Positions 5,968 to 64,000 of a DNA stretch of 64,000 nucleotides are shown in pieces. The translations under genes and the position numbers were made by a program. Under the pieces are notes generated by a model. The model saw only the letters and a list, made by a program, of their open reading frames with translations. It had not been told where the DNA came from and did no database searches. Each line of letters opens with the position of its first letter. Positions within the stretch are counted from its first letter, which is position 1. The DNA is taken from contig NC_134030.1 in the NCBI RefSeq assembly GCF_964204645.1, positions 6,800,778 through 6,864,777 on the forward strand, written 5' to 3'. The stretch comes from Tubulanus polymorphus. Lineage: Eukaryota > Animalia > Nemertea.

Positions 5968-16125
<10,158 letters not shown>

Positions 16126-52376: not shown

Positions 52377-52678
52377 CTATAGATTGACTTCAGTCGGAAT
52401 TTTCCGAGTGCAGTTACCAATGAAAGGTTCTTCGGAAAAATTGTTTTTCATTTATTCATGTTTACCCGATTAATAAAACTAGTAGCCGTTTAGTCATCGT
52501 ATTGTGTTGTTATTATTTCCTTCGCATTTGATGTCACGGAAACTGTGCAGCTGAGTCTGATGTCGTCGCTGATTGGTAGTTATACGAACTGTCTCGTGTT
52601 TCCGCATTCGGGTGTCGCAGTCTCTCTCAGCAGGAAATGTTGTCATTCTTCGACTGATGACTGTAAGAAACTTAAACG

Positions 52679-55600
52679 ATGCAAACGATTCACGCAGCTG
52701 GAATTATTTTTATGGCTCCGTTGTTAGTGATATTTAATTTCATATTCGCAGTTTCGCTGGTAAGTGAAAGTTTTGTTTAACCGACAATAAGCGATACTTT
52801 TGAAATTCCGAAGATTATTTTTGGTGAACGTATATTTTATCGCATGCTCTTGGTTGTACTGGATTCATCTTTTAAAGAAACTCGATAAATACCGGTATAT
52901 CTATATAACGGCTGTTGCATTGTTTTAGGACGCAAATAAATACTCTACAATAATCATATATATACTTCGATAGTTCCACAACAACATCTAAAATCCTCTG
53001 CTCTTTGGGTCGTTGTTGATTAGCTTTTATAGATCGGGTGGACTAGGATGAGAAATACTCAGGCTCTTAGTCGCAAAATTTTCGGCTTAGCGGGGGCGTT
53101 GTCTTCGTATGGAATTTCAGACGGAGGTTGATTAAATTTTCAACGTGCGTCAATTTGCCGCCGCCAAAAAAAATCAATTAAAGTTCTAATTAAGGGGGTT
53201 CCGCTGCCACGATTCGACGTGTGGCGAATTGTTTTCTAATCAACAAAAACTCATTATCTCCCACTCACGACTTTACGCGTCAATTCTATTTATATCACCG
53301 GTAAACGTAAAATATTCGAATTAAATGTGAAAAGGGAGAGGCGTTATTTCAGCTATACTCACCAATCTCGTAAGAAGCAAGTTATTATTCTTTGACGCCG
53401 CAAAAGCCTTTAAAATAATGTTTATATACACTGATACCTAGTAGGCATTATTGGGGGTTCTGTGAGAGTCGATGTGCACTACGTCATCAATATAGGCGTT
53501 TCAAAATAACAAATATAAACTATGACTTTTGGCGATTGTTTTGTAGTTAGACATTTCATAACTCATATTTCATTTTGGATAAATTTCAATAATAATATTT
53601 GAGAGGATGTGCACTATGTCATCAATATATCGGGGCTAGACTGGTAGCCGGTCAATTCAATTGTCGATATACTCAAATCCAAATAACTTGATTGATGGTT
53701 ATCCTAGAGAATTTATTTTATGTTATTTATAGTCGACAATATAAAGCAATATATGTGTTATTTTTCAAGGTGTCAAAAAACTTTAAATTTAGTTTTCTTG
53801 TTATGTCCCTCAGTGAATAGTTTAGTCATGCGTTAGAGATTTTATTTTCATTTTTTTCGCATTCTGAAATGGTGGAAGCAAGCGAAATAAGGCCGCGCAT
53901 TCCTTTTACACAATATTTTCTTATCGTATTTTTGAAGCGTGAATCCCCGAAAGGCCAAACGTCATTTGCGAAATTAATCGCCGCCAAGCATTGCGTGGTA
54001 GTTTATATTCATCACGGATACAAACACCTGGTTATGTCAGCATTCTGAAATCATCGGTGAAATACCACACTTAGATACGTTAAACGTCTGTTATGTCATT
54101 ACAACAATCCTAGACCCACACTTAATTAACGATCGGTGATGCTCTAAGCGAAATATTAGCTGTTGCCTATGCTACTTCAAGGAGGAAAAACTACACCATA
54201 TTCACATCTCGGCAGCAATGAAAATCTATACGGTCCAGTTTTATCGACCGAGAAGAAAATCCACTCAAATCTGTCTTATAGAATTATGAATATTTTATGC
54301 TTATGCATTTATCGTGAAGTCGGTTTTTAAATTCAAATCTGTTCGCATTCGATGCAGATTGTATATGAATTAGACTTGCTTTTTGGTTTATTCGGGAATC
54401 ATTATGGACTCATGTCTTTGAACACAGACTTTGATTGACTTTGTCAATTAAAACGACCATGACAGGACATGCGCTTACGTAAATGTGTTTAATCTCCTGA
54501 CGGTTTCTATTACGTCAAGCTCCCGAAGAGAAAGATACACAGTAATATCCCATCATATGCCTTAATAAGGAACCAATAAATAACTTTAATTAGACTGTTC
54601 GACTGACGTCTATAGATTCTCAGAAGGGTGAGACCCAGTTGGGGCTCTAGATTAAAGGTTAACAATTTATCCTATCAATAAGATTAATAGTTATTCTTAT
54701 TTTGCCAATAAGTAAATTAGATTCCGGAGCCATCATCATATGATAACATATTCCAAACCCGACGTTGATCTTAACAGGAGTCAAAATGATAACCACGCAC
54801 GGCCAGTGAAGCAATCATTGGGAGCTCGTGCGACTTCAATTTCTAACTTCGCTTTTATAGAATCCATTTGTAGTTTAGCTGACCAGCGAGGTTTTCATTA
54901 ATGCTTATTCGTTAACGCATCTGGAATAGACGGAAATGATTATCGATATCATCGGTGAGAACTAAAATACCATGTAATCATCTCGGATTACCGCGCCGAT
55001 AAAATAAGAATACTAGTCTGCCCGCTTTAAGTTTAATAAATATCGGCCAAAATGGTTCAATAAGATTTTAGTTAGAGATGCGTATTGAATTATTCTTCAC
55101 CTATCCCGTCTTGTTGGCCGTTGGGGCTGACATCTTGAAATTTCTCTCTGTCTTCAGACATCCGTATCAAGGTGTTCCAATTCACGCCAGTCCATTCCAA
55201 TTTTTTTCTATATCTTCCTCTCCCTCTTTGTACGGTTCCCTGGTCTTGGCCAGTTCAGATGATCATTGAGTGTTAGATAGTTTTAATATACGTCGTAGGT
55301 TTTTCGATTCAATTTTTGAATTGCGCTTTTGATGTTGTACGGTGTCGAGTAACGTTGACACGTGGGGCGCGGTGCGTTGCGAGTCTTTGTAAAAAAAACC
55401 ACTATACAATTCATAATCTCATCTCGAGTGTAAACTTAACATTTGATATCTCATAAAGCCTTGTTTGCGCGCGCACGCGGAGCTATGATTGTGCTTATCT
55501 GATCGTTCCAGTGTCAAGCTAGTTCACTGGGTTCCTTTAAACCACACAGCATTCTCGAAAATATTAATAAGTTAGCAAACTTCATGAAAAAATCTATGAC

Positions 55601-58600
55601 AGACATGAATTTTATGAATAATGATTTGCCTTTCCTCAGGTGGATGCATTTCCGATTTCAAGCTACTCAGATTATAAAACATGGCCACTACCCGGAGGTA
55701 AGTATACTTTCATCTTGCCTTCGTCAGGATCTTCGTTAGAACGGACGATTGTTCATTCATCGCTTATTACGAAATTTCCGAAACTATGCAGCTTCGTTCT
55801 TTAGGTAATTCTATCGGTTTGTAGTCATGATATCACTAGCAACGTCGATTAACAAAATGAAAGATTCTAAATCATTAATCAGAAAATCCGTTGAATGGCG
55901 TATACGGATACTACTTTTTGTGAAGAGAAATTTTAGTCGCGATTCACCAGAAACGATAGCATCAGATGCTTTCATTTTCTACGAAGATAGAAAGAAAAAA
56001 CTTTTTATTGTTAGTTCCTTCGAAAGGGAATTTCTTGAATCACAAATGATGACTAATATGGTCTTAACGTGGGCGGCTTGGGGACATTAGTGATATTTCC
56101 AAGATTATAAACATGTATGAAGATCCTGATGAGTTATAAACAGCTTAGTTTGTGTAGCCTTAAGGTTATCTAATTGTTTTGTAGTCTGATGATAAAACAA
56201 TTAGACATGTCTATATGTCTATGATGATATCACAAGAATTATCTTTCTCTGAACATTTGTAATTTAGAAAGATCTAGGTAGATAAGATCATTTTATTGTC
56301 CACAGAAATATTTGCAAAAAACTGGTTCAATGGTTTAGTGCGTGATATCAATGTCAATGTTGTAAGTGACAAGAGATTTAACAGCCGCGGAAGCGAACAT
56401 CTTTTAAAGTTCAGTTCATCTACGTTAAGTTTCCGTCCAAAAGACGTAACAACATGACTTGTTCTGATTTATTAATTGGCTTATCTACTGTATAGAAATG
56501 AAGTTCATAATTGGTGTTTCATTTGTGTTCAGGTTCGTTTATCTACGAGGATGACAGCGGTTGTCGGTGTTACTCGCAGTACTGGACCAATGAACCATTA
56601 GCGAAATGTATCGTTGAATACGGCAGAAACCCTTGCGAATCGGCGCAGCTTGTTCCGTACAGACATGTTGCCAAGAGGGGACGCAGATACTGTAAGTACC
56701 CACCGCCAAGTGCGGTAGCTAATGCGATTTAGGTAAAGTGAACCCATATATTCTAGAAACGGGTATCCTTGTGATGCATGAAGTGGATGTCGCCCAAAAA
56801 TGCAGTAAAAATGTATCACAAAAAACTAAACTCTTGATAATCAACGAACATATATGAAATGAATCATGATGGTCAGTATCATTCGTTTCTATAGAAACTG
56901 AATTGATTTTATCTTTAAGTATTTCCCCACTTGTTTTTTTGAGTGATTGATTAATTTTTGATTTGATTTGAGTTTAGTTTAGTTACCTCACAAACCTACC
57001 ATCACCTGCCGGGAACAAAACAGGGGACATTTGAAATTGGAGACCGAAGTAGCAGAAATGTTGTATGATCGCCGCTCAAACTTACAGAATCTTTTGTTTT
57101 AATCGAAGTACAAGAAGCAAATTTTTGTTCCGGTTCATTATCATAATCTTTCAACCAGTCTGAACCGGCAAGCGGCTAACCCCAGAAATCCGATCTGCTA
57201 CCACGATGAGAGCTAAAGTAGCCATTAGCCATATTCGGTTTTCTAAATAATTAAGTTTATAGTGGATTGTCTGTCAGTGCTTACACCATTATCTCATTAG
57301 GGCCCCACTGTTTATTACATCGAGCACAACCTTTCCTTCAAGCGACGTTCATAAGAAGAAATATCAAAAGGTTCTCGCTAAAACTAGGCATCAGATGTGT
57401 ATGGTGGCTTATAAGGGCCATAGCGTAAAATTCCTGGTATGTAAATGAGGGCGCCAGAACGCCAGAACGCCAAAACGAAAAAAAACGTCCAATTTTCTCT
57501 AAAAGTTCGTTTTGGCGCGCCAAAACAACGAATATTCCGTTTTGGCGCCCCCGCCAAAACGAACTTTCGTTTTGGCGCCCCCGCCAAAACAACGAAAAAC
57601 GTCCAATTTTCTCTGAAAGTTCGTTTTGGCGCGCCAAAACAACGAATTTTCCGTTTTGGCGCCCCCGCCAAAACAACGAAAAACGTCCGATTTTCTCTGA
57701 AAGTTCGTTTTGGCGCGCCAAAACATCGAATTTTCCGTTTTGGCGCCCCTGCCAAAACGAACTTTAAACCACGTAAAATAATTCTATATATACGTTAAAT
57801 ATTTTCATATATGCAAATTTATGCAAATTACACACAAGATCAACGCGCCAAATTGAAAAACAATTTTACTGTGGTTGAATGCTTGTTTTGGCGGGGGCGC
57901 CAAAACGGAAATAACCGCGCCAAAAAGAAATTTTCTTTGGTTTTGGCGCGCCAAAACGAACTTTTAGAGAAATTTCGACGTTTTTCGTTGTTTTGGCGGG
58001 GGCGCCAAAATGAAAGTTCGTTTTGGTGGGGGCGCCAAAACGGAATATTCGTTGTTTTGGCGCGCCAAAACGAACTTTTAGAGAAAATTGGACGTTTTTC
58101 GTTGTTTTGGCGGGGGCGCCAAAACGGAATATTCTCCGTTTTGGCGCGCCAAAACGAACTTTTAGAGAAATTTCGACGTTTTTCGTTGTTTTGGCGGGGG
58201 CGCCAAAATGGAATTTTCTTTGTTTTGGCGCGCCAAAACGAACTTTCAGAGAAAATTGGACGTTTTTTTTCGTTTTGGCGTTCTGGCGCCCTCATTTACA
58301 CACCAGGAATTTTACGCTATGGCCCTTATCAGCCACCATAGATGTGAATAGTTGTACCAATAAAACATGGAAAAAATGTCACATTGGACGCTGCGATTCA
58401 ACTAGTAACGCAGTTTCTTTATCGGTGAAAAAGCTAAATGTCAGCGTGTTAGTTTGTTCATCACTTAAACAGCCTTTTTACCATGTTATTTAAATATATT
58501 CGATGCAACGCTTATTGATCAAAGTGACCAAGGTCAAAGAAAGCGTTCGTTCATTTCTTAAGTGACACTTACGAATAAGCTCTCAAGTCTCGTCGACAAG

Positions 58601-58927
58601 CATCAGAGTGCGCTCTACAAAAATTCTCTACAAAATACTCTGGTGATGGTTTCTATGTTATCATTCTTAGTAAACGTAGAATTGTTTCTTAGTTTTTCGT
58701 TCTTTTGAGATAATTTGTAGACGAATGTTTTATATGAGACTCATGTTTGTATTTATACAATTTTCATCAAAAATCTATTATCAAACAAATGAAAGTAAAT
58801 TAATGAACTTTTATTCACATTTTCAGCGATATTCAACGAGCCACTCGGCTGTGTTTGTTTGGATCAGTCGATGTTTAGTATTCCTATGAGAAGATGCTAC
58901 GACGAAAACGGAATGTTGTTGTGCTAG
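52679..58927 (+). CDS. Secreted cysteine-rich peptide precursor (132 aa) with two tandem 4-Cys modules
   Basis: Exons 52679-52759, 55640-55697, 56533-56691, 58827-58927, all three donors GTAAGT and all acceptors pyrimidine-rich CAG, join in phase: MQTIHAAGIIFMAPLLVIFNFIFAVSLVDA-FPISSYSDYKTWPLPGGSFIYEDDSGCRCYSQYWTNEPLAKCIVEYGRNPCESAQLVPYRHVA-KRGRR-YSIFNEPLGCVCLDQSMFSIPMRRCYDENGMLLC*. Confidence 0.8.
55070..55270 (-). mobile_element. Possible degenerate 3' end of a LINE (RTE-like)
   Basis: Minus-strand fragments LNWPRPG..., IGMDWRE..., EDREKF resemble C-terminal residues of RTE/L2 ORF2; broken frame. Confidence 0.3.
57086..57242 (-). pseudogene. Frameshifted exon of a small secreted peptide, nested antisense in intron 3 of the Cys-rich precursor gene
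   Basis: Acceptor TTATTTAG, signal-like NRIWLMATLALIVVADRISG, then after a 1-nt shift PLAGSDWLKDYDNEPEQKFASCTSIKTKDS, donor GTAAGT. Confidence 0.35.
57400..58340. mobile_element. ~940-bp foldback MITE, TATGGTGGC family, 6-bp TSD
   Basis: TIRs TATGGTGGCTTATAAGGGCCATAGCGTAAAATTCCTGG / CCAGGAATTTTACGCTATGGCCCTTATCAGCCACCATA, flanked by GATGTG; arms built of TTTTGGCGCGCCAAAA and TTTTGGCGCCCCCGCCAAAA arrays. Confidence 0.92.
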
Positions 58928-60451
58928 TGGTTAAAACGTATATAACCTTATAATCATTTTTGAACTATTTATTCAAATAGTATGCATACGAACATCGATC
59001 GTGAATCGTGAAAGTATTTTTTGAAATAACAAGTTGAACTGTCCTATTAATGTTGGTAATTATCAATTTGCTTGAGCTACGGGATAAAAGCTGCTAGATT
59101 ATTATGTTTCGATAAGTAGCTAGGGAATGATTTGATATACCATAGTCATCAAGATCTGATTAAGAAAAAGTATTCACCTTAGAAACTCTAGTAAAAGCGA
59201 TTGAAAAATGCTGAAATTGTTTACCGCTATCTTCTAAAACTATTGTTTATCCATATAAATTTGCCGATCAATTTTCATTTCGTGATTCTTTGAGTATCGT
59301 TTTTTATCTTGATATATTTACACCAATCAATTATATTTGTTTGCTTGTACATGTAATGAATTATCAGTTTTACATATATTGAACTATCGTCAAAATAAAA
59401 TCAACAATGTCAGTTATAGCTTTGTTTTGCACGAATGACGCGGAGATAGCGGTATGATGACTTGGTCTCTAGAAGGCTGGAAAGGTTTTTCCAGCTTATT
59501 TTCAGCCACTTCATTCCATACATCACACAGCCGTATTTTTCGGCGAAGTAAATAGTGTGATGAACCGCGGACAACGCCGTCGCATTATTTTAGTTTGCCT
59601 TAAATATACATTTGATAGAATTACCGAGTGTTGTATTTAACGACGCAGGATCTGGGAACAGCCAACCTTTTTACGTCATTGTGCCTTGGTGTCTGAAGTA
59701 TTGACATTTGTATTGCGGAATAATTGATAGATAGATTGTCCATTCACGTTAGTCTCCTAAACAAACCCCTGTCAGCCGATTAGCTATTCAAGTTCGTACG
59801 CCAGACGATTGCTGTGAGCGACATTAAACAATTTATCAGATGGAAAATGTCGTAGAAACTGCCAAGAATGATCAATTATTGTTTGTTTTCTTTTCTATGT
59901 CTAGATAATTCACTGTGTGCGCCCTAAAATCGCGCGTATAAGGAAAAATGAAATGAAATCCCAAAGCCATTAAGCAGTGAAAATACCCCTCAGCATGCAT
60001 GTAAAAAAATGATGATTCTTTTTTCCTTATGCGGAGGAGAGGCATTAAAAAGTTTAACAGTGACTTCTCGTATGATGTCTAAAGTATACTTTTACGGATG
60101 TTATAAGGATTATGATTATTCTAGTCACGACATCGGTAAACTTGACTGATAGAGGATAATAAGTGGATTAATTCCTCTTTTATTACTCCCGATCGCCCGA
60201 AACGCGTTACATCTGCAGGAATTAACATCAATTTATGTGCATTAACTTGCATCACAAATAGTCGACGGAAAACTTTTATGATTGAAGTCAACTTTCATAG
60301 AGTTTCATAGCCTGCGCAAGAACACCGATTATCTAACGCGTTTTATTAAGAGAAAGGATTACGTGTACATTTACCACTGAACACCGAATGATTAAGAAAC
60401 ATATGCAGCAAATGGCCCGGCCCAAAAAGTTTATTCAGTTAATAATATTAA

Positions 60452-63400
60452 CTAAACTTCGAAAATGGTCAACGAGTTGTATGTTTTCTGTGACGTGATC
60501 TTCTCCACGAACGCCACCATCCGGTCAAGGAGTGAGTAACTGTTGGTAAGAGCCAAAGCCAAACTCGGTCGATACGCCACTGCTTTCAGGAAGTCCTCAA
60601 CTCTACCACCTATACGGACGATGATGATTTTGTTGTTGAGTTTTCTGAAGCGATGAGCTTCGCTTTGAAGAAGGGCCGAATTTTGCAGCCGTCCACCGGC
60701 TATAATGACGGTAAACTGATTCTTAGACCGGTTCGAGTGTTTTTCGAATATGTCCTGAAAATAAAAGATTGTTTATGAGATAAAATTATCGAACAATACA
60801 ATGAGTCCTAAGGCTTCTAACTCAAAAGATGTATCATTTATCATAAATTCTACGCTTTCCACATTATAAAAATAGATTTAAGATAAAATGAATTTCTCCT
60901 GCAAACCTTTCTTGCTTTGCGTAAAGTTTGACCGAACTCAACAGAACCTCGCGCGAACGACGCAGCCGCCAAACGTTGCGTGATTGCTGCCTTCGACCGG
61001 TCACCCAAGTTTACATAGGTGTTGTTGGCACCCATAACAGCAACACGAATCTTCTGCAAGTTCACCAGCTCTACATACGCCGCGACGAATATTTTGGCCA
61101 CCGTATATTCGTCACTGCTCGAACAAGTAGCGCCATTTATAATGAACACGACATCCGAAATGCAGGTAGCTTAAAGAATAAGATCAGAAATTTAATGACG
61201 ACTTAACTCAGTAATACCAGTAAAACTTCATCACAGAACTTCTACCAGGCTAAAACCTTTTAAACCCGATTAAACCTTTTGATCGAAAGAAGTGATTACA
61301 ATAAACGTACGTGGTTTTGGGCCCTTAGGTGGTAGCGTAGGTGTCACCGATGTGCGTCTCGACGTGGCTGTAATAATCAAGATTTTCATGGTGCAATCTA
61401 AGAGTAGTATTTGATTTTGATTACTCCGTAATTTCCAAGAGCAAAATGAGTTAACGAAATAACGAAGTATTGAATAGGATACAATGAAGCAAAGTAAGTT
61501 TTACCCGTCACGCTGTTTTCACATTGTCTTCCGCAGAAGCCACTGCGGCAATCACAAATGAAAGAGTGACCGATTGGAGTGCACCTTCCACCATTTTTAC
61601 ACGGATGACTAGAACATGGGTCTTCTGGCCCTTAAATAATAAAAAAATTATTGCTAACGTCAGTTCAAGAAATCTGAAGGACACTCATACAATTTATTTT
61701 ACTTATCTATTTCTAATCACCTATTTCACATCGTCTCCCTCGATAACTGTTAATGCAATCACAAATATACGACTGTCCAATTGGGTTACAGCTACCGCCA
61801 TTTTTACAAGGATTGGTAGAACAAGGGTCTTTTGGTCCTTAAAAGCGAATCACACATTCAATGTAGGATAAAGGTGCACGAACAAAGGGAAGAATGCGCC
61901 TGTTCTAGATTCTAGATTGATAACCTGAAACTAACCTGTGGTTGTAACTGTACTTTGATGTGGTGATGGAGACGGGGTATTCAGAGTAGTTGTAGATGTT
62001 GCTGGTGGAGAAGTTGTGGGAGAAGTCGATTTTGGGGGTTCTGTTGTTGTTATTGTTTTTTCCTGTCCTGGATACGAAGGAGTTGTCGTCTCCGTGGGCG
62101 TTTTTATCGTGGACTTGTTTTGTGCTGAAAATATTTCATTGAGTCTAACGTATGGAAAAATGACGTTTCAATTAGTATCATCTAAAATTTGTTCACTTAC
62201 GACAAATAACATTGCGCAGACCATGCGATATCAGAAGAAGTTTGTCGTAGGATACAATCGGTACGACCCAGGTTCGTTGAAACGCCGCAGCTCGCAGTTT
62301 GTCGTTGATCTCCCCACGTCCAACGCGTATGAATATGACTTTATCGCCGCTTTGACGATATTTAGCACCTTCCCGCTGTAGATGTTCATTATCATGAGGC
62401 TGTCCATCGGTAATTATGATCGTAAATCGTGGATCATTTTTGCGAGACTCGTTGAATGTTTTCTGGAAATTCGGAATTTCCTAGAGTCAAGTATTTTCGA
62501 AGAGGGAATATCATTTCTGGTCTTAGAGAAAGAAAAATGAACAGAACTTACTAATCTCGCAAATTCCATGCCGTTGCCGATGGAAGTCTTGCCCGTTACG
62601 AATGGGATTTTGTCTATTTTCTTTATTACGGAAGGCCTATCGACATCGGTGAAACTGACAAACTGCTTAGTAGTCGCCTTATCACTGAACCTTATCACGG
62701 CGACCCGTACCCGTGTCTTTCCTAGTTCAACAGAGCTGATGAATCTATTAATGAATCTTTTGCCATCGGTGAAATCACTTTTTCTGAGATCTGACGAACT
62801 GTCGAGCAAAAATACCACATCTGCGACACACCCTGCTTACAAAAAGAAGGATTGATCGTTTTATAACGGTACTAATAACACATACAATTCGATTCAAGCA
62901 CGTTGGATTATTACCGGTCGATGGACTTTCAGTGGTTGTTTTGGACTGGCTAAACGGACATGTATTGGTGGCTTCACTGGTACTAATTGTTGTAGTTGTA
63001 GGATGTCGCGTCACTGGTCCTGCGACTAGAGTTAACGACAAAAAAAATAAAAAAGCTACTTGAATACATTTTCATCTAGATATCAAGCCGTTTCATTTTC
63101 TACTCACGACACGTCAAATTATGCAGAGCAGGTAGGGCCTGTCTTAGATCGCTATAATGCTTCAGACGAACAACAAGATCAAAATTGAATGCCGCTTGTT
63201 GCAGTATGGAATTGTCTTTAGCGCCACCGATTTGGAAGAAGATAATCTTGTTACTATTTTTCCTGAAGATCTCGGCTTCTTTTTGCATGTTGGCATTGTT
63301 AGTCGGCAAGCCATCGGTTATAATGACAGTCATACGCTCGATACCTTTTCTTGTATTGGTGAAAAGTTGCTGAAGAACGAATACAAAATAATATCAGTAA

Positions 63401-64000
63401 TTACAAACATACTTAATAGGTTAAATGAGGAAGTTAACTTGTCATACCGTTCTTGCAATTTTCATAGCGTGACCGATGAAAGCCATTCCTTTGACAAATT
63501 CCATACTATCGATTTTACGTTCGACCATCTCCTTATCATGCTCACTCAAGTTTACAAATACTTTCGTCGAGCCCATGTCGCTGAATCTGATAACGCCGAT
63601 CTGAGTATGATTACTACCGAGTCGAACTGAATTGACGAACGCTTTCACGAAATTCTTGACATCTACGAACGAAGACTTTTTCACTCTATTTGAAGTATCA
63701 ATGAGGAATCCTATATCAACTCGACAGTCGGGTTGAGACGGAGGCGTCGTTTTGGTACTACTAGGCGTAGTTGTTTTGCTCTGTACAACCTCTGTTGTGT
63801 TATCAAATTTAACCGGCGTTGTTGTTGTATTTCCAGATTTAATCGGTGTCGTTGTTGTATTTCCAGATTTAATCGGCGTGGTTGTTGTATTTCCAGATTT
63901 AATCGGCGTTGGTGTGTTATCAGATTTAACCGGTGTTGTTGTTGTATTTCCAGATTTAATCGGCATTGTTGTTGTATTTCCAGATTTAATCGGCATTGTT
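60452..64000 (-). CDS. VWA / EGF / Thr-rich extracellular matrix protein (matrilin- or collagen-VI-like), 5' end outside window
   Basis: Three VWA domains (VDIGFLIDTS..IGVIRFSD, DVVFLLDSSS..VAVIRFSD, DVVFIINGAT), two EGF exons (DPCSTNPCKNGGSC, DPCSSHPCKNGGRC at ~61505-61837), Thr/Pro-rich linkers; stop TAG at 60452-60454. Confidence 0.88.
63790..64000 (-). repeat. Coding ~27-30-bp tandem repeat (PIKSGNTTTT units)
   Basis: Repeated CCAGATTTAATCGG units translating to a mucin-like segment. Confidence 0.9.

Follow-up and report, generated by a model that had tools for sequence, protein, structure and literature searches.

Four exons in the window (the whole 64-kb stretch of DNA analysed, contig positions 6800778-6864777, G+C ~38%) are a real annotated ribbon-worm gene, LOC141907907 of Tubulanus polymorphus. 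The reading we prefer, to which we give a probability of about 0.5, is that this real, single-copy and lineage-restricted gene encodes a 132-aa secretory pre-pro-protein that would be cleaved between two homologous cysteine modules. The hydrophobic N terminus would target the protein to the ER and would likely be cut after V-D-A30, and the two anciently duplicated CxC-x12-C-x8-C modules, each on its own phase-1 exon, would fold with two disulfides each. Furin or a prohormone convertase would then cleave at R95-G-R-R98, and trimming of the basic residues would leave a 63-aa N-terminal and a 34-aa C-terminal peptide, both of which would work extracellularly as a signalling or defensive pair. From the gene's sequence we infer transcription, secretion, disulfide pairing, cleavage and any function of the products.

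Gene model and locus

Translating all four exons (window 52500-59100; Table 1) reproduced letter for letter the protein proposed in the preliminary description, which had spliced the exons in phase into 132 residues. The spliced product is identical to RefSeq XP_074653766.1 (132 aa, gene LOC141907907, Tubulanus polymorphus), already listed as an uncharacterized protein, and NCBI's pipeline therefore reached the same splice model independently. We obtained XP_074653766.1 through a protein search with exon 3 and ran all full-length analyses on it. Exon translations, splice sites and the RefSeq record agree throughout. All three donors are perfect GTAAGT sites (CTG/gtaagt, GAG/gtaagt and ACT/gtaagt, the slash marking the junction), and all three acceptors are pyrimidine-rich and end in CAG (...cctttcctcag/, ...tttgtgttcag/ and ...cacattttcag/). 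The + strand of the 64-kb window contains just 27 copies of GTAAGT, so its presence three times exactly at the ends of frame-compatible open reading frames is not chance.

The introns are in phases 0, 1 and 1, and the two split codons encode G47 (g/gt) and S100 (t/cg) of the 132-aa protein. Exon 2 supplies VDA, with a candidate signal cleavage after A30, and then a Cys-free pro-region, FPISSYSDYKTWPLPG. Exon 3 runs from module 1 (G-CRC-x12-C-x8-C) through the tail ESAQLVPYRHVA to the multibasic KRGRR, which contains the furin-type RGRR.

Table 1. Features of LOC141907907, in window coordinates
Feature	Position	Strand	Length	Content	Remarks
Exon 1	52679..52759	+	81 nt	start codon and hydrophobic N-terminus MQTIH...FAVSL, 27 codons	residues 1-27; phase-0 intron after
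Exon 2	55640..55697	+	58 nt	VDAFPISSYSDYKTWPLPG and one base	residues 28-46; phase 1 at end
Exon 3	56533..56691	+	159 nt	module 1, Cys-free tail, KRGRR	residues 48-99; symmetric 1-1
Module 1	56559..56636	+		G-C-x-C-x12-C-x8-C	contig 6857336-6857413
Multibasic site	56673..56687	+		KRGRR	protein residues 94-98
Exon 4	58827..58927	+	101 nt	module 2 G-CVC-x12-C-x8-C, last Cys, then TAG stop	residues 101-132
Candidate poly(A) signal	59394..59399	+		first AATAAA after stop	~470 nt downstream; inferred

Neighbouring features suggest no functional link with LOC141907907. Intron 3 holds a ~940-bp foldback resembling a MITE (window 57400-58340), with terminal arms at 57400-57475 and 58265-58340 (76 nt, 93% complementary) and long inner arms of ~84-bp subrepeats rich in GTTTTGGCGCGCCAAAAC palindromes; the long open reading frames on both of its strands are repeat artefacts. 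Upstream on the + strand, ORF fragments between 43000 and 51538 stop ~1.1 kb short of the LOC141907907 start codon and may form one multi-exon gene, with a faint ARM-repeat match that falls below the cut-off (14.9 bits). Farther away, a single open frame of 307 aa at 12492-13415 (+) matches Pfam Apolipoprotein L above the cut-off (41 bits) and marks an ApoL-like ribbon-worm gene. Downstream, two exons on the minus strand (62414-62818 and 63442-63996) carry von Willebrand factor A domains that score 58 and 54 bits, with a Thr/Pro-rich repeat (TPIKSGNTTT...) ahead of the second domain. Long (TA)n-type dinucleotide microsatellites at 352-903 and 8459-8794 appear as poly-(IY) open reading frames.

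Relationship of the two modules

With the cysteines held in register, 10 of 32 residues are identical between the modules (I, G, C, C, Q, P, C, E, G, C). The identical Cys spacing, the Gly before Cys1, the Pro at -4 from Cys3 and the E-x-G noted in the preliminary description are all present in both, the last of these as Glu at +3 and Gly at +5 after Cys3. Similarity extends to the non-Cys positions, whose BLOSUM62 score is 14, while 100,000 shuffled versions of module 2 score -30 +/- 11 (p = 4.8e-4), and phmmer with exon 3 as query aligns a second domain at residues 101-129 of the protein (E = 3.5e-4). BLASTP of module 1 against module 2 returned no local alignment, so the relation is visible only with a fixed Cys register and with phmmer.

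The corresponding DNA is identical at 44 of 96 positions and at 12 of 32 third positions, and blastn found no similarity between the two module flanks or flanking introns. This lack of DNA similarity, with third positions randomised, implies that the exon duplication is old, and an old duplicate that has nevertheless preserved its scaffold argues for selection on the protein, present or long past. On these comparisons the modules, each on its own phase-1 exon, are to be read as ancient exon duplicates related beyond their cysteines.

Probable secretion and proposed processing of the precursor

The N terminus has a hydrophobic core but no basic n-region, and it is uncharged over residues 6-28, a run of ~23 residues that is long for a signal peptide. 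Candidate cleavage sites judged by positions -3/-1 fall after A24, S26 and A30, and the protein is probably secreted. The uncharged run is also of transmembrane length, no Lys or Arg stands ahead of the core and AlphaFold predicts a single helix over residues 4-30, features that would suit a type II (signal-anchored) membrane protein holding both Cys modules on the cell surface and possibly shed by furin. We think such an anchor very unlikely, given the good -3/-1 sites (AVS/L and VDA/F), a core broken by Pro14 and Asn20, and the lack of a positive charge on the N-terminal side that would fix the orientation.

Furin recognizes the consensus R-X-K/R-R. RGRR at residues 95-98 fits it and lies in the Cys-free tail, after Cys4 of module 1 and before module 2, which bears out the layout originally proposed of hydrophobic N terminus, Cys scaffold and multibasic site. 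Cleavage there, followed by trimming, would give a 63-aa peptide with a predicted pI of ~5.0 and a 34-aa peptide with a predicted pI of ~4.3, each with 4 Cys. The expected masses are ~7.26 kDa for the first (residues 31-93) and ~3.95 kDa for the second (residues 99-132), against ~11.8 kDa for an uncut chain, and two disulfides would lower the mass of each peptide by 4 Da. As both predicted peptides are acidic, a classical cationic antimicrobial role is unlikely. The protein contains no amidation signal.

Module 2 contains a second RR (residues 121-122), an indication that a dibasic pair in this protein need not be cut. This bears on a different account, in which a small two-domain protein is secreted and stays whole, KRGRR being a basic linker between disulfide-stabilised domains and the ~102-aa chain acting intact, say as a binding protein or as part of the mucus or tube. 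Cleavage of dibasic pairs is not universal, and the whole mature chain would be near neutral (predicted pI 6.7). The library searches returned no orthologue with which to compare the basic site, and hence no sign that the site is conserved. We nonetheless judge an uncut protein unlikely, though it deserves to be taken seriously: RGRR, with Y next, matches the furin consensus in full, and processing sites usually lie where this one does, in a Cys-free tail beyond module 1, here at the end of exon 3. Our preference therefore stays with a cleaved precursor.

Relatives and known systems

We searched the genome (268 Mb, 77 contigs) for paralogues with exon 3, with exon 4 and with a two-module profile, and the gene itself was the sole real match; the profile search gave two further matches at chance level (E 0.76 and 1.65). 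A degenerate DNA pattern for G-C-x-C-x12-C-x8-C matched 90 times genome-wide, against 31 for a control pattern, and most of the matches were CTG repeats. Among the matches inspected, the repeat-free ones in open frames comprised one EGF-like exon, one Cys-richer ORF and the two modules, which share a strand and are separated by 2.3 kb; this pattern search, which the preliminary description had suggested, uncovered no other plausible module among them. LOC141907907 is accordingly single-copy.

The exhaustive phmmer search used exon 3 (module 1) as query. Against 1.84 billion representative proteins it found no relatives besides XP_074653766.1, in a setting where a 52-residue query needs ~45 bits to reach E = 0.001 and distant relatives could escape. 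Four other phmmer matches were long repetitive proteins whose scores are summed over repeats, and we rejected them as homologues. A word search of 5.8 billion proteins with the full protein returned XP_074653766.1 alone, and the PDB gave no match by sequence or by profile. Across 27 supplementary files of the nemertean neuropeptidome (PMC8557429), none of 11 motifs of 5-6 residues occurred in any peptide precursor; their sole sequence occurrences in those supplements were in a receptor alignment. The gene is most likely lineage-restricted, with no detectable relatives.

Structure prediction, which had also been proposed as a check, yielded models of limited use. AlphaFold (AF2) reached a pLDDT of 54 on the whole protein and 76 on the 32-residue module, with disagreement among the five models; the whole-protein model is unusable, and Foldseek matched the module model to nothing in the PDB. 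The ESM Atlas offered no usable neighbour, the TM-scores of its low-confidence model being <=0.42. No described family was matched in Pfam, the protein libraries, the PDB or the nemertean neuropeptidome supplements, in keeping with the original statement that the family was an unrecognised one. Taken as a whole, the interpretation given in the preliminary description is partly supported.

An isolated gene could also be an annotation artefact, or one no longer expressed, with good-looking exons and no protein product. The 90% cluster of XP_074653766.1 has one member, whose source is genome annotation, and look-ups found no contig encoding it, in a collection from which entries of this genome may have been withheld. 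Neither a transcript-derived copy of the protein nor any relative turned up in the databases searched; a widespread gene should show ribbon-worm transcriptome proteins in a 15-billion-protein collection. We hold this to be improbable, because the three perfect GTAAGT donors join compatible phases, every exon keeps an intact open frame, the ancient duplicate keeps four Cys together with G, Q, P, E and G despite randomised third positions, and NCBI's pipeline arrived at the same model on its own.

Pfam offered a single candidate family, DUF4789 (PF16033), an insect domain that is uncharacterised and whose function is described as unknown (10.1101/2023.09.03.556149). Residues 6-43 of exon 3 (module 1 and the tail after it) align to profile positions 15-54 of 101 at 16.9 bits (E = 0.009), below the gathering cut-off of 27 bits. 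This weak local likeness would be expected if the gene were a very divergent member of DUF4789 or of another Cys-rich family, a prospect we regard as highly unlikely. With the whole protein the score drops to 13.3 bits (E = 0.12), also below the 27-bit cut-off; the alignment takes in just 40 of the 101 profile positions, module 2 has no match in Pfam, and a six-frame search of the genome found no DUF4789 match anywhere. Weak cross-matches of this kind are common among Cys-rich sequences.

The preferred reading, a convertase-cleaved precursor of two peptides, can be carried further only tentatively. The two-disulfide scaffold may be an undescribed one, with the exon-duplicated precursor yielding two homologous acidic peptides, possibly as one two-chain molecule, whose role would be that of a hormone, pheromone or mucus/proboscis toxin specific to nemerteans and acting on a receptor or target of its own. 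The ribbon-worm peptide repertoire has been mined for neuropeptides and toxins, and if both peptides are made they would enlarge it by a new small disulfide scaffold and provide a clean case of precursor diversification by symmetric phase-1 exon duplication. At present LOC141907907 has value as a candidate to be taken up by peptidomics and in situ methods, and not as a result in itself.

Among known precursors, those of endothelin and sarafotoxin offer one point of comparison. They contain a two-disulfide CxC peptide and a homologous 'like' module with the same Cys spacing, on separate exons, and are restricted to vertebrates and snake venom. The likeness lies in two homologous CxC-...-C-...-C modules on their own exons with adjoining basic sites. 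Endothelins and sarafotoxins are, however, spaced CxC-x7-C-x3-C and have a hydrophobic C-terminal tail ending in Trp, whereas the spacing here is x12/x8 and module 2 has no residue after its last Cys. The Cys spacing excludes membership of this family, and no match to it arose in Pfam, in the PDB or in the exon-3 phmmer search.

Insulin and relaxin prohormones share the order of signal (here a candidate one), N-terminal Cys chain, basic site and C-terminal Cys chain ending at or near a Cys, and the last two Cys of the insulin A chain are likewise spaced x8. They have 6 Cys in non-homologous chains (B chain C-x11-C, A chain CC-x3-C-x8-C) from between which a C-peptide is excised, whereas LOC141907907 has 8 Cys in two homologous CxC-x12-C-x8-C modules with one basic site between them. 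We rejected membership here too, as there is no CC doublet and no Pfam insulin match at E up to 10.

CLCCY, CCWamide and prohormone 3 (PMC8557429) are small secreted lophotrochozoan precursors that combine conserved cysteines and basic sites with a signal peptide, and the present protein, with its candidate signal, resembles them. The CLCCY proneuropeptide family is reported missing from nemerteans (Thiel et al. 2021, PMC8557429); its sequences have one KR site followed by a lone module of 8 Cys, which includes a CC doublet and, towards the C terminus, a C-x-C (PMC8557429). A different Cys framework and the lack of an internal repeat in the sequences of that supplement led us to reject identity with CLCCY. 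Across the CLCCY, CCWamide and prohormone-3-related sequences (PMC8557429) there are CC doublets and a single Cys-rich module, in contrast to the two CxC modules found here. The design of LOC141907907, that of a putative convertase-processed Cys-rich secretory precursor, is an ordinary one, built on a CxC-x12-C-x8-C scaffold that is undescribed.
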